Source: Rebecca billardiae RCC1528
Lineage: Eukaryota > Protista > Haptophyta
Direction: 5' to 3'
DNA: 64,000 nt
Assembly: GCA_965240325.2 (NCBI GenBank)
Contig: OZ251240.1
Location: forward strand, 1-64,000
Shown: in pieces, positions 748 to 54,150 of the stretch
How positions within the stretch are numbered: position 1 is the stretch's first letter
Layout: each line of letters begins with the position of its first letter
Program-made: the position numbers and the translations under genes
Notes under the pieces: model-generated
Told to the model about the DNA's origin: nothing
Database searches by the model: none
Seen by the model: only the letters and a program-made list of their open reading frames with translations

Positions 748-1424
748 TAGATCAAGAGACGCGGAACTGCGTCCGCGCGCGATGCGCAGCTGGCAGCCCG
801 CGTCGGCAGCGCGAGCGCGGTCAAGCGGACGGACTCACGCTGCCCGCCTGACTCACGCGGCGTGACTCACGTACGGACTGAACAGTGAATATAACTACTG
901 ACTGAAAGAATATACACTGTACAGCGCAGGCGGGCCCGGGTTGTGACCCCGACGCGGTCCGGCCTCCGCCACTCGGACCGGCGAAGCCGCGAGGCGCACG
1001 GCCTCCTGACGCGGGCACTGCCAGGCGCATGATCTGCCGTTGGCGTTTACGTGAATGCCACCCTCATCGTTGGCGCTCGTTACCTCGTAGCAAACATGAA
1101 GCAGGCGGTGAAACAGCCCTGGAGCTGGGCCGAGTGGGCTCTCAGCCTGGTACACGGCGACGAATTCAGCGCACGCGCGCCGGACGAGCTGCCTCCGGAC
1201 AGCAGCGCCAGTGCCTGCGCCCCCGCGTACATGCGTGCACGCCTCTTCTTCGTATTCGTTATTCCACGCGTCTGACCGAGTTGCAGCTGATGCTGGCTTT
1301 CGCTCAAGGCGGACCGTGCACAGGCGGCTGGTGCCAAAGCGAGCTGCCCGCGCGAGCGGCGAGACTGAGAGAGGGCGCGCGCATGCACGGACCTGAGGCT
1401 GTCCCGGGGCACGGCCATGATTCG

Positions 1425-14100: not shown

Positions 14101-17100
14101 CGTGGGCTCGGGCTTTGCCGAGTATGGCGAGGGCCAGCTGTGCTGCGTGCTCGGCGGCGGCGGCGGCTGCGCGGCGCCGGCGACGCTGCTGCCGCCGTCG
14201 GCGGCGGCGCCAACCCTGAGCCGCGCGCGCTGCGTGCTGCCGCCGCCGCTGGGCGGCGCGGCGGGCAGCGTGGCGCTCGAGCTCTCGCTTGGCGGGGGCA
14301 GCGCCGACTCGACCACCGCCTCGGCGCTGCCCTTCCTCGCGTACGACCCGCCCACCCTCGGCTCCGTCAGCCCGGCGAGCGGCGAAGCGAGCGGCGGCAC
14401 GGAGGTGACGATCGGGGGCGCGGGCTTTGACGCGCTGGCCGGCGGCGCGCTGCTGGCCGTGCGCTTCGGCGACGCGCCCGCGCAGCCGCCGGCGCGCGTC
14501 ACGGCGGGCGAGGTTGTCGTCTCCACGCTGTACGGCGCCGCGGGCCGCGCGCAGCTCCGCGTCTCGCTCAACGGCCAGCAGTTCACGCCCGCGGCCGCCG
14601 CGACGCCGCCGCCCGCGGGCGCGCTCGCGTTCACGTTCGTCGGCCTGCACGCGCCCGTGCTCGAGGGTGTGGCGTTCAACAGCGCGGCGACGCTGATGGT
14701 GCTGCGCTTCGACGCGCAGCCGACTGACCGCGCGGGCATGGGCAGCGGCGTGGGCGAGTGCTCGCGCGTCCTCGACGACGACACCGTCGCGCTGGTCGGC
14801 GGCGGCGCGGCCGCGGCCGCGGCCGCGCCGCCGCAGTGCTACTGGATGGACGACTCGACGCTCGTCGCGCGGCTGAGCTCGGCGACGCTCGCGCGCGCCG
14901 GCTCGGAGGTGGGCGTGCGCGCGGGCGCGCTGCGCCCCGAGCAGTGCGGCACGCCGTGCGCCGCCGCCCTCGCCTCCGCCGCCGCGCGCGCCGCCATCGA
15001 CGCGGACGCGCCGTGCGGCGAGGGCGCGCCGTGCCCGACGCCTGTCGCGGCCGTGTCGGGCCCGGCGGTGCTCTCGGCGTGCCCGGGCGCGTCGCTCGCG
15101 CTCGACGCCTCCGCCTCGTCGCGCGGCGGCATCGGGCCCGCCGCCTTTGAGTGGCGCGTCGACCCGAGCCGCTCGGCGCGCGCGGCGTCGCTCAACGCGC
15201 GGCTGAGCGCGCTGCCGGCGCGCACGCCTCGGCTCTCGCTCGGCGGGCCCGGTGCGGCCTCGCCGACTGAGCTCGGCGTGAACGGCTCGTTCGTGTTCGT
15301 GCTGCGCGTCACGTCGTTCCTCGGCGTGCGCTCCGCGCCCGCCGAGTGGGCCGTGTCGCGCGGCGACGGCGCCAGCCCGATCCTCGCCATCGACGGCGCG
15401 CCCGAGCTGCGCGCGCGCGCCTCCGAGCCCACGCTGCTGAGCGGGCGCGCGCAGCTCGCGCCGTGCTGGCCGCCGAGCTTCGAGCCGGCGATGGCGTTCC
15501 GCTGGGCGCTCGAGGGCGCGGCGCGGGTGGGCGACGGCGCGAACGCGAGCAGCAGCGCCTCCGCCAGCGAGCTCGCCGCCGCGACGGACGTGCTGCTCGC
15601 GCGCCTCGCGTCCGCGCGCACCGCGGTGCTGCAGCTGCCGCCGCACGCGCTGGCCGCCGGCTGGGCGTACGACCTGGCGCTCACGGCGAGCATGGCGGCG
15701 GCGCCCGCGCAGGCGTCGACGGCGCGCGTGCGCGTGCGCGTCGTGCGGCAGCCGCTGCGTGCGGTGATCGCCGGCGGCGACCGCCGCGTGCCGAGCTCGC
15801 TGCGCCTCGCCGTCGACGCCTCCGCGTCATTCGACCCCGACGCGCCGACGGCCGACGGCGGCCCGCGGCCGCTGTCGTTCGCGTGGAGCGTGGCGAACGC
15901 GAGCTCGCTCGAGCCGGTGGCGCTCGGGCCGTCCGCGGCGAACGCGAGCGGCGCGCTCCTCGAGCTCGCGCCCGGCGCGCTGCCGCCCGGCGTGTACGCG
16001 CTCACCGTGCGCGTGTCCGCGCCCGGCCGCGCGCCCGCGGCCGCGTCGGTGACGATCGAGGCGGTGCCGGGCGCGGTGCCCACGCTCGGCTTCGAGCCGC
16101 TCGGGCGGCGCAAGTGGCCGGCGGTGTTCGACCGGAACCCCGAGCGGCTGGCGATCAGCGCGCGCCTCGACGCCGCCTCGCGCGCGCTCGAGGCGGCGGG
16201 GCGGGCGCGCTTCAGCTACGAGTGGAGCGCGCGGCGCGTGGGCGCGGCCGGCGCGCTCGAGCCCGCCGGTCTCGACCTCGCGGACAGCGAGCGGGTGACC
16301 ACGACGGGCGCGGCGCTGCGCGCGCTCGCGATCCGCAGCGGCGCGCTCGCGCCCGGCGCGACGTACGCGTTCCGCCTCGCCGCACTCGGCGGCGCGCAGC
16401 CCGCGTACACGGAGGTGCGCGTCACGATCAGTCGGCCGCCGTACGGCGGAGGGCTCGAGGTGGCGCCGGCGTCGGGCGTGGCGCTGCACACGAGCTTTGC
16501 GCTGCGCGCGGCGGGGTGGGCGGTGGACGACGAGGAGGACCTGCCGCTGAGCTACGCGTTCTCGCACGCGCCGCTCGGCGCCGCCGCCGACGCCGACGCC
16601 GCCGCGCTCGGCGCCGCCTCCGCCGCCGCCTCGGCGAGCGCGCTTCTCCCCGCGGGCAACCGCATGCTCACCGTCAGGGTGGCGGACGCGCTCGGCGGCG
16701 CGGCGCTCGCGCGCGCGGCCGTGGCCGTCGCGCCGCCCGGCGGGGGCGCGGGGCTGCTCGACTCGGTGCTCGCGCGCGCGTACGCCGCGGTCGCGACGGG
16801 CGCGGCCGAGACCGCCGCGCAGCTCGTGAGCGCCCTCGCCGCCGCGCTCGACGCGACGCCCGCGGGCGGCGACAACGCCACCGTCGCTCGGCTGCTCGAG
16901 CTCACGGCGGTCGCGGCGGCGGCGTCCGCGCCGACCGCCGAGGCGCGCGCGGCGAGCGCGGCCGCGCTCGCCGCCGTGCTCGGGGCCGCGCCGCCCGGCA
17001 CGCTCGACGCCTCCGCGCAGGCCGCGGGCCTCGAGCAGGTCGCCGCCCTCGCGTCGCAGTCGGCCGCGTCGGGCGTCGACGGACCGACCGCGGCCGCGCT

Positions 17101-19275
17101 GCTGCGCGCGGCGGACGCGGCGCTCTCCGCTGACGCCGACGCACCGCTGAGCGCGGCGGAGGCGGAGGCGGTGGGCGCAGCGGCGACGAGCGCGGCGGGC
17201 GCGCTCGCCACCGCGCTGCTCGCCGGCGCCGTGCCGGGCGAGGCGCCCTTCGAGGCCGTGGGCAAGGCCATCAACGTGAGCGCGACGCGCGCGGACGCGG
17301 CCGCGCTCGGCAACATCACGCTGCCCGGGCCGGGCGGCGCGGGCTCGGTGGGCGTGCCGGCGAGCGTGTTCGGCGGCGTGCCGCCCGAGCTGCTCGAGGG
17401 CGGCGTCGACGCCGTGCTCTGGTCCTCCGCGCGCAACGTGCACGGCGACCCGTCGACGCAGGCGAACGGCACGGCCGTCGCGTCGGGGCTGGTGACGCCC
17501 GTCTTCTCCGTCACGCTCTACTCGGCGTCGGCCGGGCTGGCGCTCACCATCTCCGACCTGCCGGACGACGGGCGCGTGCTGGTCGAGGTGCCCGGGCTCG
17601 ACGGCGCGGGTGGCGCGGGCGAGTGGGGCTGCGTGTGGTGGGACGAGGGCGCCAGCGCGTGGCTCGATGACGGCTGCGAGACGGTGGTCGCGCGTGCGGA
17701 CGATGGCGCGCTCGCGCGCTTCTGCGCGTGCACGCACCTGACCGACTTTGCGGGCGTGGCCGTGCCGACGGACGCGGACGAGGCGCGCTCCGAGGTGGTC
17801 GAGTTCAACATCAACACGCTCTCCGCCGACGACGCCGCCGCCGCCGTCGGCGTGGGCGCCGGCCCCGTCCTCGCGCGCAACCCGTACATCTTCTGGCTGG
17901 TGGTGGCGATGAGTGCCGGCTGCGCGCTCAGCGTGGCGCTGTTTGGCGCGCGCGACGTGCGCGACCACGCGCGGCGCAAGGAGCGCATCCGGCGGCTGCT
18001 CGCGAGCGAGGCCGGCCCTGCTGGCGGGCTGCTGGCCTCGCCGGCGAAGCCCTCCCTCTTCCAGCGCCGCGCGGCCAAGCTCCAGGCGGAGGAGGACGCC
18101 CTGTTTGGCGGCTCGCCGTTGCGGCCCGCGCCCGCCGTCTGCGAGCGCAGCCGATCCGCCTCCTCCTCCGCCTCCTCCTCCGTCCCGGGGCCGCGCGGGA
18201 TGGCGCCGGCGGACGGCGGGGGCGAGGGCGAGCGCGCGGCGCGCGCGCCGGCCGCTGTCGCCCCCATCTCGCCCGGGCGCAGCTTCGCCACGCGGCAGCC
18301 GCCCCAGCTCTGGCCGCGGCGCGACACCGACTGCGCCCCCGACATCGGCGGCGCGGAGGCGCTCGGCTTTGCCGACAGGCTCGAGGCGCGGCTCGACGAC
18401 CTCGACGACCTGGTGGACGAGACGAGGCGGCGCGCGGCGCTGACGATGCAGAAGTACGCGCGCGGGCGCACGGCGCGCGCCCGTGTCGACGAGGCCTCGC
18501 CCCAGCTCCGCGAGCGCAAGGCGCGCGCCTCGGAGCGCACTCGCGACCACTCGCTGACCAAGCTCATGCGGCTCGTGGGCGAGAGGCTGAGCACAGACCA
18601 CTCGCTGCTCGGCATCTGGTTCGCCGACCCGGAGGACGCGAAGCGCGCCGAGCTGGCGCAGATCTTCTGGAGCATCGCGATGCTCGGCCTCGTGATCACG
18701 TGCATGCTCTACGACGCGAGCGGCGGGCCTCCGGACGCGTCGGCGGCGCCGAGCGTCTCGCTGCTGAGCGCGGTGCTCACGGCGCTTCTCACAGCGGCCC
18801 TCTCGTCCCCCGCGCTCGCGCTCTTCCGGCTGCTCTTCCGCTGGGGGTACGGCCGGCGCTCGGCGCCGCTCTCGAAGCGCGTGTTCGCCGCGTTCCTCCG
18901 CACCGAGCTCGCGCAGCGCGAGCGCGAGCGCGCGCCCTTCTCCACCGCCGTCAGGACGAGCGTGCGCACCGGCGCGTACCTGCTGCCGGTGCTGCCGCGC
19001 AAGACCTCAGACCGGCGCGGTGCCGGCGGCGCGCTGCGCGCCGCCGCGCCCGCCGACCTCGAGCTCGCGCGCGATTTCGCGCGCCGCGCGTCGATCGAGG
19101 CGGAGCGCGCCTCCTCGCCGGGCATGCCCAGGCTCGCGCCGGTCACGCTGCCCCGCATGCCCGGCCGCTCGTCGCCGCGCGCCAAGCCGCGGCCGCCGCC
19201 GCCGCCGGCCGTGCCGGTGCGCCGGCCGGGCGGGCCCCGCGCCACCGCCCAGCTGCCGCCGAGCATGGCAGCGTC

Positions 19276-45963: not shown

Positions 45964-48751
45964 ATGATCGAGTTCCTCGGCCGGTGCGAGGCCGCCACCC
46001 GCGCGCCGCGCGCGCCGCGCGAGCGCACGCCGGGCGGCCGCGCTTGACCGCGCCGCGCCGCGCCGCGCCGCCGCGCGCGCAGGGGCGGTGGCGGCGCGCC
46101 GATCCGCGACGCGCAGGGCAACGTGCACGCCGACCTCCGGCGCTCCGTCGCCGCGCCGCCCGCCGCGCCGCAGCTGCACCCCGCCTCGCTGCAGCCGCAG
46201 CCGCAGTACCCGCCGCAGCAGCCGCAGCCGCACGCGCCGATGGCGCCGCCGCCGGCGTACGCGCACGACGCGGCGCACGCGCCGTGGCAGCCGCCCCCCG
46301 TCGCCGGCGCGCCGCCCACCGTCGTGTACGCCGCGCACGTCGGCTCGCCGCCGCCCGCGCCCGTGAGCGGCGCGCACGCGCTGCCGGCGCACGGCGCTCG
46401 CTCGCCGATCGCGCCCGGCCCGGCGGGCGGGCACTTTGGGCGCTCGCTCGGCGCGATGATGGGCGACGTGACCGAGGAGGACGCCGCCGCCGCGCGCGCG
46501 CGGCAGGACGCCCTGCGCCGCGACCTCGCCGCGCAGGTGCTCGAGAAGAAGGCGCGCGACGCGTCTGAGAAGGAGCGCACGCGCCGCGAGGACTTGCACG
46601 CGGAGGGCAGCTTCTACGCGCAGCAGCAGCAGCCGCAGCCGCAGCCGCACCCGCACCCGCACCCGCACCCGCAGCAGCAGCAGTACGCGCCGCAGCCGCC
46701 GCCGCAGTACGCGCCGCAGCAGCAGCCGTACCCGCCGCAGCCGGTGGGCGGCGCGTACGGCCAGCCCGCGTACCAGCAGCAGCAGCCAGGTCTGCACGCG
46801 CACGCGCACGGCGCCGCGCCGCCCACGCCGCAGTGGCTCGGTGCGCAGCCGTGGGGTGCGCCCCCGGGCCCGGTGGGCGCGCCGCCGCCCGGCGTGTACG
46901 CCCAGCCGCCCATGCAGCCGCCCATGCAGCCGCCGATGATGCAGCAGCAGCAGCCGCCGCAGTGGCAGCCGCAGCCGTCACAGCCGCAGCCGCAGCTCAG
47001 CCCGCACCGCCCGCCGCCCGGCACCGCCGCGCCCGCCCTCAGCGGCGTGCCCGCCGCCGAGGGCGAGTCCGTGCTCGGGCTCGCGCAGCAGGCGCAGCAG
47101 CGCGCGGCCGCGCACGCCGGCGCGCACAGCCCGGCGGGCTCGGCGGGCGGCGGTGCCATGAGCGCGGCGCAGCGGATGCGCATGCGCGCGCAGCCATGCG
47201 CGCAGCAGCCGCACACCGCGGGCGGCGCGTACGGCGCGGGCGCGCCGCTCTCGCCGCCCGGCGCGGCGCCGAGCGGCGCGGCGCTGAGCGCGCTGCTGCG
47301 CCCCATCGGCGCGGCCGAGCCGGCAGCGGCGCACCCGCCGCCAGCGCACGGCGGCGGCTACGGCGCGGCGCAGCAGCCGCCGCCGCCGCCGCCGCTGAGC
47401 GCGCCGCACGCGCAGCCGCGCGCGCGCGCGAGCTCGGCCACGCGCGGCGCGCCGCCGCCCGGCGCGCGCGGCGCCGCGGGCGGGCGCGGGCGGCGCGCGA
47501 GCGGCGGCGGCTTTGCGGCGGCCGCGGCGGCGGCCGGCGCCGAGGGCGGCGGCGCGCCGGGCCGCGGCGGCTCCAAGCGGCAGCCGATGGCGCTGCAGGC
47601 GGGCCGAGACGCGTCCTCCACGGCGGCGGAGCGGCGCGCCAAGGGCGAGGCGGCGCGCCAGGCCGCGACCGCGCCGCGCGGGCGCAGGCACGACCTCGCG
47701 GCGGGCGCGCCGCCGCTCGACGGCTCGGCGGGCGCGCGCGGCCGCTCGGGCGCGGCGTCGGCGGGCGCGGCGGGGCGGCGCGCGGGCGCGGGCCGCGAGC
47801 GCGGGCGGCGCGGCTCGGCCGCGGACGCGGGCGCGCACGCGGAGGGCGGCGCGGACATGGCGTCGCTGCAGTCGGCGGTGGCTGCCAAGGAGAGCGAGCT
47901 GCAGCGGCTGCGCGGGCTGCTCGCCTCGGCCAACGCCAACGCCAACGCCAGCCTCGACCTCGGCGCGGGCGCGGGGCAGTGGGGCGGGCCGCAGCCGCAG
48001 CCGCAGCAGCAGCAGCCGCCGCCGCCGCACGCGGGACACGTGCGCGCTCGCGCGAACGCGCGTCCCGCGCACCCCGCGCTCACGGCCGCGTGCGCTCCCG
48101 CGCTGAGTCCTCCCCCGCGCCCCTCCTGCCCTCCCGCCGCGCCGTGCGCAGCCGCAGCCGGGCGACGAGCTGGACGTGTTCATGCGCTCCACCGCCATGG
48201 CCGCGCTGCAGCAGCAGCCGCCGCCCGCGCACCAGCCGCTGCCGTCGCAGCAGCAGTGGTACGCGCAGCAGCAGCAGCAGCAGCCGCCGCCGCCGCCGCA
48301 GCAGTGGGGTGTGGTGCCGCAGCAGACCCAGCCCGCGCCTGCGATGCCGCACCCACCGCCGCCCATCCGCGCACCCGGCGGCTCGATGCCCGGCAGCGGC
48401 CGCGCCTCGGCCGCGGCCTCCCCGTCCGCGCCCGGCTCGGAGCGAGACCCGTACCTGGCGCTGCACAAGGCGTGCGTGCGCGCGGACAGGAGCCGCTGCG
48501 GGCAGCTGGTACGCGCGGCGCGGCGCAGCCCGGCCGTCGCGGTGCGCCCCCGCCCTCACGCGCGCCTCCCGCCCGCCCCTGCGTGTCCCCGCCCGGCGCA
48601 GGACTGGCCGCAGCTCGCAGACCACCTGCAGCGGCACCGGCTGCACGTGCCGCCCGAGCTGGCGGACAGCGCGGCGCGCAAGGGCTCGGTCAAGTACGCG
48701 CCCTTCATCGACCGGCTGCGCGAGCTGCAACCCACGCCCAGGCTCGCGTGA
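45964..48751 (+). CDS. CSPP1/CCDC66-like centrosome/cilium protein with Pro/Gln tracts and a degenerate EF-hand-like tail
   Basis: Splicing out 45984-46082 yields LGRGGGGAPIRDAQGNVHADL. LRRDLAAQVLEKKARDASEKE follows. Further introns at 48040-48151 and 48509-48601. Confidence 0.6.
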
Positions 48752-49034
48752 CGAGACGTGCTGACGACAGGTGCGACTGCCGACCGGCCAGGGCTGCGTG
48801 CCCGGCAGCCCGGTGCCGGCAGTGCCGTCGAGTATATGCTGCTCTCGGCTTACTTTCGGACCGTCTTGACGCCGTCGAGCCCGTCGACGCGCACGTCACA
48901 GCAGTCTGTAGTGCGCGCGCATGATGCGATACACACACATATATATACATATATATACATGCTGTGCTGGGGCGTTATGGTGCAGCGCAGGAATATATGC
49001 GGATGACTCTGCTATAGCAGCCCGTCAGATGATG

Positions 49035-51296
49035 CACAGTGAACAGATGGACCTCAAAATGTCTACTTTAGAAGCCCCCCTCGAGCGGCCACAAAGGGCA
49101 AGATGGCGGATTGCGGCGGCCCGCCGCCATCCCTCAGTGCCCGCCCATCAGGTGTCCATGACCGACGTCACACTCGATCTCGAGAGAGCAGACCAAGACG
49201 GCGAGGCGGGTGACACGACCCATTGCATCCCCGAACTCGGTCGAGAAGACGAAGCGGCGCTACAACGCGCGTGGCAGCAAGCTGCGGACGGTGCCCGCGG
49301 TGTGCGGCTGTCATGCCACCTCGCGCGCGCACATGCGCGGCGTCCCGAAAACCTTCGGTCGATGTCTCGCGAAACGGGCCAAATGGGAGGGAGACCCATG
49401 CGCGCACCCTCCCTTGAATTTGCAACCGGCATTGACCGGCCAATCTCGCGCGATGTGCAACCTCTCCGGCGCGCTCGCGCAGAGGTGAGATGGTGCAGTC
49501 GCCGCAACTCAAGCTGAAGCACCAGCAGGAGGCGCCGAAGGCCGCGGCGGGTGACAGAGCACTGCCGGAGCAGTACCAGGTGCGATACGAGGCCGCGCCG
49601 TTCGCTCGGCAGTGCAGCTCTCTCTTCTCTTTCGTTGCGCGCCGGATCAATCTGAGGGTGGGCGCGTGGTGAGCAGCGCAGCTCGACACTGGCCAGTGCT
49701 CGCAGAGCACCAGATCCCGAGGATGGACAGCGGCGTGGCGGCGAAGCTGATGGCAGCGATCAGCGCCCCACCGGGCTACATCGTACCGCCGGGGTGAGCG
49801 TCGGGAGTGATGCGCTCTCTGATGTGGGCGATCGCGAGCGCGCATTCTGATGTGCGCTCGTGGATGCAGCTCGAGGCGGGGAGGGCCATCAGCTGGTGTG
49901 ACCCTCAGCCGTGCCCTGCTGCGACAGGGGCGGGAGCTGATGGAGGATCCTGTCGCCGACGCAGTAAGCGCGCCGTTGAGCACCTCGGTCTGCAGGAGTC
50001 CGTGCTTCGTTCGGCATCATGGCGAGCAGCGCGCGGAATCTGGGCGCGACGAGCAGCGTGATCGGATGCGCGCGTCCGGACGAGCCGATCATGTCTTTGA
50101 CTGTTTCAGCCCTCCGCGGGCTCCCGTGCGCTTCGGGCAGGAGCCCTCATCATCAGTCGTCTGATGCCCTGCATGACGCTGCCATACTACTACGACACAC
50201 GTACGCGTGAGTCACTGTGAGTCATATCGATGCGATCGTCGCACAGCAGTGGCGCTGCACGGCCGCGGAGCCCAGGGCTGACGATCAGTGTGGACCGAGC
50301 CGTCGGCAGACGCAGAGTGGACACGACGAGGTCGTAGTGCGCGCCGCGCGCGGCCAGGTACCGCCAGGGCCAGGGCCACGCCGGTGACGGCGGGCAGCAG
50401 AGGATGCAGCACGCGCGTGACGCCAACGTGCCGTGCGAGGGCTACGCCAACGCTGCTCAGGCACCGCAGCAGCCGCAGCTCACGCGTGAGGACTTCTGCC
50501 GACTGTGGTTGGCGGCGGTGCGCGAACTCGTCGGCGGCGGCCGACGACCGCCGCGGAGGTGAAGGTGATGGTGCTTGCTGCGCTCAACGCCAGGTGCGCG
50601 TATGCGCGCGAGCTCAAGCGGTGGACGAGCACGGTCGCGTGCTACCCGCACGTGGTCGTCACCATCGCCCCTCGCGCCATCGTGCGACTCGGCGGCGCGC
50701 TGCACCGCGCGAGCACACAAGCGTCGGAGCACGACGGCAAGATCATCGGCAACACGTTCCGCGACCGCACGTGCCGGGCGGGCGGGCTGAGCTCAAACAG
50801 ACGCGGCACGAGCATGCCGCGAGCTGGCCGCGTCGAGCAGGCCGCCAAGCAGGTGATCGTGGGCAAGATCATGAAGAAGCGCACCAACACCGTCGACAAG
50901 AACGGCCGGCTGCGACTGCTTGCAGCAAAGACGGTGCAGCCGGGCGCATCCAGTGGCAGCGGGCCTGCGCGCGAGGTGCGTCTGCGCGAGATCGTCCATG
51001 CGCGTCGCACCGCATCTCCACCTCCGCCATCTGACGCCTGCGCACCGCATGCGCGCGCGGCCGCCCGGTCGCGCGACGCACTGGCGATTGAGATGACATT
51101 CACGCGTGTCGCGGGCAGTAACAGACGAAAAGACGAGGTGGCAGGGGCTGGTGAGCGGTGTCTGAAGCATGTATTGGGTGGTTGCGCACCTGCCAGTGCC
51201 CGTCCGCGCCGGCTCAGGGTTCTTACTAGGCCGCCGGCCCGCGTCGCGCCGGCGGCGCCCTAAAGTGGACATTTGGCCGCCATTCTGTTCACCGTG
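49035..51296 (+). mobile_element. Transib/RAG-like DNA transposon (decayed), 37-bp bipartite TIRs, 5-bp TSD TGATG
   Basis: TGATG|CACAGTGAACAGATGGACCTCAAAATGTCTACTTTAG ... CTAAAGTGGACATTTGGCCGCCATTCTGTTCACCGTG|TGATG. Confidence 0.85.
50160..51263 (+). pseudogene. Degenerate RAG1/Transib-like transposase C-terminal remnant
   Basis: DALH (50163) and YPHVVVTIAPRAIVRLGGALHRASTQASEHDGK (50643-50741) are in the same frame, separated by stops. They resemble RAG1 DALH and [32 protein letters not shown]. Confidence 0.6.
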
Positions 51297-51404
51297 TGAT
51301 GAGACAGATATGACTCGCGCCGGCCGGCGGGCCGTTGCCCGTCAGCAGATCGAGCCAGCAGTTTTACGGCTTCGTCGCAGCTTCGTGCTGACGATGCGCG
51401 CGGC

Positions 51405-53105
51405 TCACGCGTGCGTGGTGGACGGCGCGATGCTCGCGGCGACGGGGCTCCACCCCGCGGCGAACTCGACGCCGGGCGAGATCCGCCCGAGCAGCCCGAG
51501 CGCCTCCCCGAGCAGCGGCTGCGCGACCAGCGCCGCGTCCAGGTAGGCGTACGCGTACAGCAGCGCGTTGAGCACGAGCACGTCCACCGCCCAGCCGAGC
51601 AGGAAGGGCAGCCGCCGCCCGGCGTACGTGGCGAGGCAGGTCTGCCGCAGCGCGAGCGGGCACGCGCCGAACGCGAAGAGCGCGTAGTACGCCAGCGTGC
51701 GCAGCGCGAACTCGTGCGCGCTCGGGCTGGCGGGCGCGCCGTGCGCGTGCGCGAGCGCGGCCACCACCTCGAGCGGCAGTGAGACGCTGTCCACCACGCC
51801 CAGGCACGCGTACGGCAGGAACATGAACGCCATCCAGCCGTACGGGATGGCGAAGGGCGCGCCGATCGCGGCGCGCACGTGCTCGTGCAGCTCGGTGCGC
51901 ACGTACGTCTCGAACGCGCGCGTGCTGCCCCACAGGTTGGTCAGCTCCGCCTCGACGATCGGCCGGTCGCTCTCCACCGACACGCGCGCCGAGTCGAGCG
52001 CAAAGAGCGACACCTGCGCCATGCTGCGCTCGTGCGAGCGCACCTTGACGCGGAGGAGCGCGCACGTGACGAGCGAGGGCAGCGCGCCCACCACGATCCA
52101 GAGCGACGCCGCGCCCCACGCGCCGTGCGCGTGCAGCAGCCGCAGGTACAGCGCCGAGCGCTCGACGGCGAACGCCACCACCACCGCCACGACCGACGCG
52201 GCCGAGACGACCAGCAGGAAGGGCGGCAGCCACAGCGGCACGAACTTGATGCGCAGCGGGCCGAGCTCGCGGCTGGCGATCGCGAGCTCGAAGATGCACC
52301 ACAGCCGCTCGAAGTAGTCCTCGCTCCACAGCACGGTGAGCTCCCTGCACGAGCGCAGCGCCACGTCCAGGTGCTCGACGCCCAGCTGCTTGAGCACGCC
52401 GTCCGACTGGTGGATGCAGAGCCGGTCGAGGAAGCAGCTCTGCCGCAGGCTCACGCCGAGCACGGCGGGCAGCCGGTGGCCGAAGAGCAGCACCGCGGCG
52501 TACAGCACGCACGGCCAGCCGATCAAAAAGTCGAACGCCTCGTGCGACGCGTACCGCCCCGCCGCGTCCTCGGACACGTGCCGCGTGAGCGCGGGCACGG
52601 CCGCAAACAGGAAGAGGCCGCACGCGAGCACGAGCGCGCCCGTGTGGTGGTGCGTGTACAGCAGCGCGAGGTGCTTCGCGCGGCGCGAGGAGGACCACGA
52701 GTGCGAGATGAACCGGTCGCACCCGTGCAGCGGCGCCGGCTTGGAGCGCGCGTACAGCGCGGCCGCGTCGGTCCGGCTGATGCCGCGCCCAAACGTGGCG
52801 GTCGAGCGCATGCTCGTGGAGCGCGCGGAGAAGGAGCCGCCGCGCACGGTCTCGGCGAGCGGCGAGGCGGACTGCAGCGAGAGCACCGAGAGGCGCCGCC
52901 GGTCGACGACGTGGAACACGGCGCCAAAGTCGGCCAGCACCTCGGCGGACGAGGTGACGCGCCACCGGAAGCGCGACGCCGCGCGCTCGCTGTCGTACTC
53001 GTGGTCGGGCGGCGCGACGGTGGAGACGCTCGCGCTGCGCAGCGCGTCGATGTCCAGCAGCTCGAGGTCGTCCTCGCGCCGCGCGCGCGCCGCGCACTGC
53101 CCCAT
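51405..53105 (-). CDS. Multi-pass membrane protein with TIR/HET-like domain
   Basis: CDRFISHSW, TM hairpin, CFLDRLCIHQ...LTVLWSEDYFERLWCIFEL, further TMs, SDRPIVEAEL...FETYVR. Intronless; start uncertain. Confidence 0.8.
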   Translation of the reverse strand: MGQCAARARREDDLELLDIDALRSASVSTVAPPDHEYDSERAASRFRWRVTSSAEVLADFGAVFHVVDRRRLSVLSLQSASPLAETVRGGSFSARSTSMRSTATFGRGISRTDAAALYARSKPAPLHGCDRFISHSWSSSRRAKHLALLYTHHHTGALVLACGLFLFAAVPALTRHVSEDAAGRYASHEAFDFLIGWPCVLYAAVLLFGHRLPAVLGVSLRQSCFLDRLCIHQSDGVLKQLGVEHLDVALRSCRELTVLWSEDYFERLWCIFELAIASRELGPLRIKFVPLWLPPFLLVVSAASVVAVVVAFAVERSALYLRLLHAHGAWGAASLWIVVGALPSLVTCALLRVKVRSHERSMAQVSLFALDSARVSVESDRPIVEAELTNLWGSTRAFETYVRTELHEHVRAAIGAPFAIPYGWMAFMFLPYACLGVVDSVSLPLEVVAALAHAHGAPASPSAHEFALRTLAYYALFAFGACPLALRQTCLATYAGRRLPFLLGWAVDVLVLNALLYAYAYLDAALVAQPLLGEALGLLGRISPGVEFAAGWSPVAASIAPSTTHA

Positions 53106-54150
53106 GCGCGGTGCCGCGCGCCCCGCCGGGTGCGCCGCGCTGGTGGTGGCGGCGGGCGGCGAGCTGGCGCTGCGAACGCTGCAAAGATGCGGCGCTGCCA
53201 CTGGTCCAACCCGCCAACCGGCAAACCCGCGGTCGCGCCGCCCGCTGCGTCCTACCTATGTCGTTAAATCAGCACACAGTTGAATGAGTGAACTGTATCA
53301 GCATTGGTATTTCATCATCAGTTCTTCGTAGCTCGTGAGCAGTGAGTCAAGATGCCCGCGGTCACCGGGCCCACCGCAGGCAGTCGGCATCGCCGTGGCG
53401 GCGGGTCGGCCTCAGCGCCTTCGCAGCCCCAGGCTCAGCGATGCAGAATGGCTGCATGCACACAAGGCGCGGGTGCACGATGCGCGTGATCGAGCAAAGG
53501 ACGTCCGGCGGCCCCACATCCTCGTCGGGCAAGTAGGGCCCGTCATCGTCGGCGGCAGGGGCTCTCGTCCACGCTGGTTGTCGTGCGCAGCGCTTGCTAC
53601 TTTGGCCCGTGCGAGCGCTCGACGTGCAAGTCGGGCGAGGACCGCCCCAAGTCGCACGATCGTGTCGACGCGCCGAGCGTACCGCATCAAACGGGTAGGT
53701 CGATTTCGCCCCCGTTCGACCTGCACGCGAGACGACGAGGGCAGCAATCGCGAATCGGGCGAAAACCCGCAGCTCGGGAGTCCTCTCACGATGTCCGCGC
53801 CGGCGTTGGATCTGGCGCGCGCGGCCCACGCGCTCCGCGCCATGGCCAAGATGGTTTTCGGCCGAGCGTCCCCAGTGGGAGCTGCGAGGGCGCCCGGTAG
53901 TGAGCGAAGCGATTTTCTTTTCTTGGGCCAAGCGATTTTCTTTTTCTTTTTTTCTCTTATATATTATTATCTTTTTCCCGCGGGCAAGCTACAAGGGGCG
54001 GACCTACGGCCCGCCATATATATATATAATATAGCGCGGAGTCACCGGCGCCCGCGTGAACGTAATCATATTGCGCATCGTCGTCAGCATAGATTGCTGC
54101 TGATTGCATCGATCACGGACGATCACCCGACGTCCCGACAGGCCCGAGAT

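Follow-up and report, generated by a model that had tools for sequence, protein, structure and literature searches.

The 64-kb stretch of DNA analyzed here (the window) contains an element of 2262 bp at positions 49035-51296. It is flanked by a perfect 5-bp match. The left copy of this target site duplication (TSD), TGATG at 49030-49034, directly abuts the terminal CAC of the element, and the identical right copy is read in the sequence at 51297-51301. Both copies were re-read at these positions, and the 2262-bp element with a perfect TGATG duplication, as given in the preliminary description of this DNA, stands. The element occupies the middle of a spacer of approximately 215 bp, which is bounded by the stop codons of a convergent pair of ORFs, 46123-48924 on the + strand and 51405-53201 on the - strand. 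The G+C content of the element is 65-70%, as against 75-90% in the flanking genes. Upstream of the insertion site, at a distance of approximately 70 bp, a (CA)n/(TA)n microsatellite is present at 48925-48964.

The two ends form a bipartite terminal inverted repeat (TIR) of 37 bp. The left TIR (49035-49071, +) reads CACAGTGAACAGA-TGGACCTCA-AAATGTCTACTTTAG, that is, a 13-nt terminal block, a 9-nt variable stretch, and a 15-nt inner block, and it starts with the heptamer CACAGTG. The right TIR (51260-51296, -) reads CACGGTGAACAGA-ATGGCGGCC-AAATGTCCACTTTAG as its reverse complement, with the heptamer CACGGTG. Identity between the ends is 12/13 in the terminal block, 3/9 in the spacer, and 14/15 in the inner block. 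The heptamers, the bipartite layout, and these identities had been described before and were all re-obtained. The layout of 13 + 9 + 15 nt is the same at both ends; the spacing is symmetric, with no 12/23 asymmetry. In an inverted-repeat search, the 37-nt ends (78%) ranked first by length among the inverted pairs of the region. The terminal 13-mer occurs without mismatch in the 64-kb window only at the two ends of the element. The inner 15-mer has two matches in the window, both at the element ends, against 0.07 expected. The CACRGTG heptamer termini, the bipartite 37-bp TIR, and the 5-bp duplication are structural hallmarks of the Transib/RAG-like branch.

A nonamer-like sequence of the RSS type had also been claimed 12 nt past the heptamer. 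An A-tract is indeed found at this distance at both ends, but its agreement with the nonamer ACAAAAACC is weak (TCAAAATGT, 5/9; GCCAAATGT, 4/9), and the tract is absent from the related end of the metagenome contig L003. The block that is conserved between the window ends and L003 is ATGTCNACTTT.

No second copy of the element was found within the 64 kb. An independent sequencing run (X1) contains short contigs of 90-100% identity that span only 49083-51167 and carry no flanks. These contigs would fit a multi-copy family with diverged members, of which they represent the interior part of the repeated unit.

A naive chance test, in which a 13-mer inverted repeat is combined with a TSD, is swamped by (GCG)n-type repeats in this low-complexity window. 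When the test is filtered for composition, a non-GC-rich 13-nt inverted repeat with a perfect 5-bp duplication is expected approximately 0.13 times per shuffled window, a value that leaves out the second block with its 14/15 identity. With this second conserved block, a chance origin of the ends becomes negligible. The only other filter-passing 13-nt inverted repeat with a 5-bp flank identity in the window (TCGCGTTCACGTT, at 14625-17285, flanked by CGCGC) is located within a long gene and probably arose by chance. We also considered the length of the duplication. For a true TSD of any other length, perfect identity over 5 bp of flank has a probability of approximately 1/1000, as computed from the flanks of the element. 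A 2- or 3-bp duplication would need five independent base coincidences, and we therefore assign a 5-bp duplication to this copy, with n=1, one copy being examined with both flanks.

The interior of the element consists of two parts. The region 49072-50489 (+) has no recognizable coding relic; its ORFs are interrupted by stop codons in all frames, and no Pfam, tblastn, or tblastx match was obtained. The second part is an open frame of 257 codons at 50490-51260 (+), which phmmer, tblastn, and alignments A1/A3 identify as the 3′ remnant of a transposase gene. All six frames of the element hold long ORFs, as is expected at such a base composition, and the 50490-51260 frame is the most protein-like of them. 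Inside it is a conserved C-terminal domain (50556-50981, +) with a conserved Glu codon (50727-50729, +) in the context ...YPHVVVTIAPRAIVRLGGALHRASTQASEHDGK... The window copy keeps this shared domain intact, with the Glu included, and keeps only the first His of an H(3-4)H motif. A Pfam search with ten ORF pieces of the element gave no relevant family, and a search of PDB sequences with the window ORF gave low-complexity matches or none. By tblastn, the element (at 50559-50981) matches only residues 830-956 of the full-length relative P0003 (described below). The catalytic core is therefore missing from the element. In the 1.45 kb upstream of the remnant, tblastn and tblastx detected neither the P0003 core nor ORF1 of the related contigs L001 and L003.

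Two candidate relics in this upstream part were rejected. The stretch 49436-49669 resembled, by eye, the conserved end of the L001/L003 ORF1 (FRVA…WPxWG), but the best match of a profile search (E ~1) lies elsewhere in the window. The sequence SDALHD, which had been described as a RAG1-like DALH motif, is present at approximately 50160, but it has no tblastn support as a coding relic. An intact ORF with three catalytic residues is absent, and the rest of the element is full of stops. The first two catalytic Asp residues, already reported as not recognized, are not recoverable in this copy. The further views that the copy is dead and that it has no RAG2-like gene agree with our results: stops interrupt the element, no catalytic core was found by Pfam or tblastn, and Pfam detects no RAG2-like ORF. 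The element is thus confirmed as a real, dead, non-autonomous copy of a DDE-type DNA transposon.

When 1.84 billion representative proteins were searched exhaustively by phmmer with the 50490-51260 ORF as the query, only 5 matched. P0001 (215 aa, E=3.8e-13) and P0002 (153 aa, E=5.5e-11) are the strongest. P0003, from an estuarine metagenome, has 957 aa and matches over residues 830-932 (E=2.7e-08); it is the sole full-length member. P0004 is an EF-hand protein that matches the low-complexity tail of the ORF (E 4e-4) and is probably not a relative, and P0005 is a decayed relative of P0001. The domain shared in alignments A1/A3 reads ELRRWTxSxxxYPHVxxxIAPRxIxxLGxxxxxASTQAxEHDGK. The searches and alignments show that the 3′ ORF is homologous to the C-terminal domain of the transposase of this family. 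The H(3-4)H motif is present as H(4)H only in P0002; P0001 has H(3)C, and P0003 has the first His only.

In P0003, the order of motifs is D360, D448, C455xxC458, DVLH579, H860, and E887, which follows the signature of the CACTA-Mirage-Chapaev-Transib (CMCT) clade and RAG1 (PMC12730594), and a C467xxC470 pair is present too. Its N-terminus is a coiled-coil. Between the transposase core and the C-terminal domain with the Glu lies a Gly/Arg-rich low-complexity linker of approximately 100 aa (700-780), and P0001 starts with an RGG stretch of the same kind. Three word-indexed protein searches with P0003 (residues 200-957, 230-690, and the piece 340-700) returned P0003 itself only. Scanning IMG/VR with the A1 profile gave no relative, and Pfam gave nothing relevant for P0001-P0005 or for sub-regions of P0003.

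P0003 is encoded on L001, a 4-kb estuarine metagenome contig, and a metagenome scan gave seven more contigs of its family. In L006-L010, an internal deletion has precisely removed what corresponds to positions 1211-3322 of L001, leaving the 5′ part together with the C-terminal domain. These copies are bounded by 34-nt TIRs, CACGGTATGCTAAAAATGSCGGTAG…. In L010, the P0003 element is present at 98-2725 as a deletion derivative of 2.6 kb with 34-nt TIRs CACGGTATGCTAAAAATGSCGGTAG.GGGTCCCC, and the same is seen in L006-L009 and L011. No matching duplication was found at the flanks of the P0003-family contigs (GGGGT/CGAGC in L010 and TACGG/ATATA in L006), which points either to chimeric assemblies or to TSD-free integration.

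The right end of L003, the contig of P0002, is AAAGTTGACAT, followed by 18 nt and CACTGTG. The right end in the window parallels it closely, with AAAGTGGACAT, 17 nt, and CACCGTG. A CACRGT terminus and an ATGGCSG motif (CACRGT…ATGGCGG…) are common to three families, and the ATGTCNACTTT block is found in two. In each of the three families, the tail of the transposase lies just inside the right end. Deletion derivatives would retain this tail because it is linked to terminal sequence that is required in cis.

The relatives also carry an upstream ORF of approximately 220-229 aa (L001:157-846 and L003:218-880) with the conserved end LPP…FRVA…WPxWG. It may be a second protein encoded by the element or an N-terminal exon of the transposase. 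A RAG2-like gene was not found in the relatives; this ORF1 of L001 and L003 has no Pfam family. On L002, the end of an ORF at 1033-1209 (-) resembles P0003 622-679 (E 0.001); it lies beside the P0001 ORF and is convergent with it, which suggests a second copy placed tail to tail or a two-gene layout in the host.

Transib is the transposon family that is ancestral to the antibody-gene recombinase RAG1. The profile comparison with RAG1/Transib that the preliminary description had proposed did not bear out its assignment: no match to RAG1 or Transib was found in Pfam, in PDB sequences, or with HMMER for the window ORFs, for P0003 and its sub-regions, or for the A1 profile. Protein-language-model features were also compared for the full-length relative. 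The nearest neighbors of P0003 230-690 are the RAG1 RNase H/ZnC2/ZnH2 clusters (0.96, 185/256 features). With RAG1 families excluded, the ranking is led by unnamed cnidarian clusters and DUF1280 clusters (0.95), followed by Transposase_21 (CACTA; 0.92) and Plavaka (0.89). This places the P0003 core in the CMCT clade, nearest to the RAG1/Transib side, without clean separation. The window ORF alone gives no RAG1-like signal by these features, its score of 0.70 being uninformative.

AanRAG1L and FcoRAG1L (Tao et al. 2022 supplement, PMC9435367) were also aligned with a stretch of 40 residues surrounding the Glu. For P0003 and AanRAG1L, this comparison gave a z of 4.2 (STQALEHDGKTL vs STESLEAGNKVL). 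The 40-aa region of the window itself gave z values of 1.2-1.9 with published RAG1-like proteins, which are not significant. The Glu at 50727-50729 had been aligned by eye with the catalytic Glu of RAG1. Its position in a domain conserved across the relatives favors this proposal, but the alignment of the window sequence does not reach significance. AlphaFold models had pLDDT values of 42 (P0003, single sequence) and 57 (window domain with four relatives) and were too poor for a fold search.

We conclude, with a probability of approximately 0.8, that the element is a decayed, non-autonomous copy with an internal deletion, derived from a rare, undescribed CMCT family that has the hallmarks of the Transib/RAG-like branch. 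Membership in the CMCT clade is well supported. By its ends and the length of its duplication, the element is of the Transib type; the protein evidence reaches no further than the CMCT clade as a whole. An autonomous relative would have provided the transposase in trans, and this enzyme would have bound both ends and made its cuts at the CAC borders. Insertion would then have taken place by a 5-bp staggered strand transfer into the spacer between the convergent genes. The conserved Glu would be the third catalytic residue of such an enzyme. The retained piece of the ORF may survive only through the adjoining right end, which would be required in cis; the same pattern is seen in L006-L010.

A stricter assignment would make the element a member of the Transib/RAG-like superfamily itself, a deep protist branch that shares direct ancestry with RAG1 and the RSS. 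We put this at slightly less than even odds. The 5-bp TSD is diagnostic of Transib (PMC1131882), and it is accompanied here by the CACAGTG/CACGGTG heptamers. The RAG1 clusters are the top language-model matches of P0003, and its ST-x-x-L-E-x-x-x-K motif is aligned with STESLEAGNK of AanRAG1L in the comparison with z 4.2. The left end (49035-49061) matches the 5′ TIR of AanRAGL, a RAG-like transposon from another alga, at 17/27 positions without gaps and has the CCTCAA box at the same 13+4 offset; when the CAC is left out, the match is 14/24 (shuffle p 5.5e-4). This likeness is suggestive. The right TIR, however, is unlike that of AanRAGL (10/27, no resemblance). The strict assignment is further weakened by the failure of HMM and profile searches to match RAG1 or Transib, by CMC-type clusters that score nearly as high, and by the motif alignment of the window itself, which is not significant. 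ESTA, a non-Transib lineage, is likewise reported to resemble RAG1 in HHpred searches (PMC12730594). The symmetric ends, the A-rich nonamer that is not conserved, and the lack of a RAG2-like gene argue in the same direction. The earlier claim of a divergent Transib/RAG lineage is thus upheld as far as the ends, the 5-bp TSD, and the features of P0003 are concerned, and it is not supported at the level of profiles, with CACTA and Plavaka clusters nearly equal to RAG1.

The element could instead come from a CMCT lineage outside Transib, the 5-bp flank identity being a coincidence or an occasional variant. The P0003-family contigs, which are possibly chimeric assemblies, show no 5-bp TSD, and the DUF1280 and Transposase_21 clusters are close to P0003 by features. 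A 2-bp TSD, on the other hand, would need the specific target TGATGATG, which has an a priori chance of approximately 1/1000, and we consider such an origin unlikely. A third explanation is that the locus was never mobile and that the inverted repeat and the flank identity arose by chance in a GC-rich, repeat-prone intergenic region. Naive searches for an inverted repeat plus TSD do match often in this low-complexity window, but these matches are of the (GCG)n type, and the filtered expectation of 0.13 does not yet count the second 14/15 block. This explanation is effectively refuted by the restriction of the inner block to the element ends, by the diverged copies in the independent run X1, and by the ORF next to the right end, which is homologous to a transposase tail that lies beside a similar end in L003. 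Its probability is very small. The decayed CMCT copy with Transib-type ends remains our preferred interpretation.

How V(D)J recombination originated from Transib/RAG-like transposons is a classic question, and non-animal lineages can help to date and polarize the heptamer and the bipartite ends as well as the 5-bp stagger. The element adds to this a very rare family in an alga, invisible to standard profiles, with the structural hallmarks of the Transib type. More tentatively, it may stand for a deep-branching protist RAG1/Transib lineage with the exact RSS heptamer CACAGTG and a 5-bp stagger, distinct from but related to AanRAGL, of which intact autonomous copies would exist elsewhere in the genome. 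We regard this as possible, but less likely than not. If true, it would provide a second independent algal system in which the origin of heptamer recognition and of the 5-bp stagger could be tested. The value of the present copy is limited, as it is dead and has no catalytic core, its protein link to RAG1 is indirect, and an active RAG-like transposon from an alga is already in the literature (PMC9435367). The copy is mainly useful as a single data point (a 5-bp TSD with the exact RSS heptamer) for a genome-wide analysis of the family.

In Transib, the 5-bp TSD is a hallmark, and the 38-bp TIR consists of CACAATG, a 23-bp spacer, and AAAAAAATC (Kapitonov & Jurka 2005, PMC1131882). The element described here is similar in its 5-bp TSD, in the CAC heptamer at the start of the TIR (CACAATG in the consensus vs CACAGTG/CACGGTG here), and in a TIR of approximately 38 bp with a second conserved block. 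It also resembles Transib in the presence of the Glu in a C-terminal S-x4-E-x3-K context and in the occurrence of autonomous together with deleted non-autonomous copies. The second block differs: instead of an A-rich nonamer that follows a 23-bp spacer, the element has AAATGTCYACTTTAG at positions 23-37. Sequence similarity to Transib/RAG1 profiles is not detectable, and a 12/23 asymmetry is absent. The full-length relative P0003 is also distinct from Transib in its architecture, with 957 aa, a coiled-coil N-terminus, and the Gly/Arg-rich linker of approximately 100 aa before the Glu domain.

The alga Aureococcus anophagefferens harbors AanRAGL, a RAG-like transposon that is active (Tao et al. 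2022, PMC9435367). Published Transibs also come from fungi, plants, and bacteria (PMC9435367), and a protist lineage, as had been suggested, is therefore not new. AanRAGL has 5-bp TSDs, and its ends consist of CACACCCAAACCT, a 4- or 13-bp spacer, and CCTCAAYAYG (PMC9435367). The window element shares with it an algal host with a GC-rich genome, the 5-bp TSD, a 13-bp CAC-starting block followed by a second short block, and a similar ST-E/Q-x-L-E-x3-K motif. The terminal block CACACCCAAACCT is particular to AanRAGL and is absent from the window when searched for. The spacers of AanRAGL are asymmetric (4/13), whereas the ends in the window are symmetric. RAG2L and RAG1L of AanRAGL are recognizable by sequence search, whereas the window element has neither a RAG2-like ORF nor a recognizable RAG1 core.

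The CMCT clade has 5′-CA..TG-3′ termini, a TSD of 2-5 bp, and a signature order of motifs, and its members are EnSpm/CACTA, Mirage, Chapaev, Transib, Plavaka, ESTA, as well as Lanisha (Kojima 2025, PMC12730594). Unlike EnSpm/CACTA, the window element has the termini CACAG/CACGG instead of CACTA and a TSD of 5 bp instead of 3 bp. ESTA differs by its TA duplication. In Repbase, the TSD is 2 bp for Mirage and 4 bp for Chapaev, and the window element with 5 bp differs from both. The H(3-4)H motif of the clade is complete only in P0002. The 5′-CA..TG-3′ termini and a TSD within the range of 2-5 bp agree with CMCT membership. The C(2)C motif after the second Asp and a His-containing motif approximately 25 residues before the Glu are partial points of agreement, and Transposase_21 and Plavaka are among the language-model neighbors of P0003.
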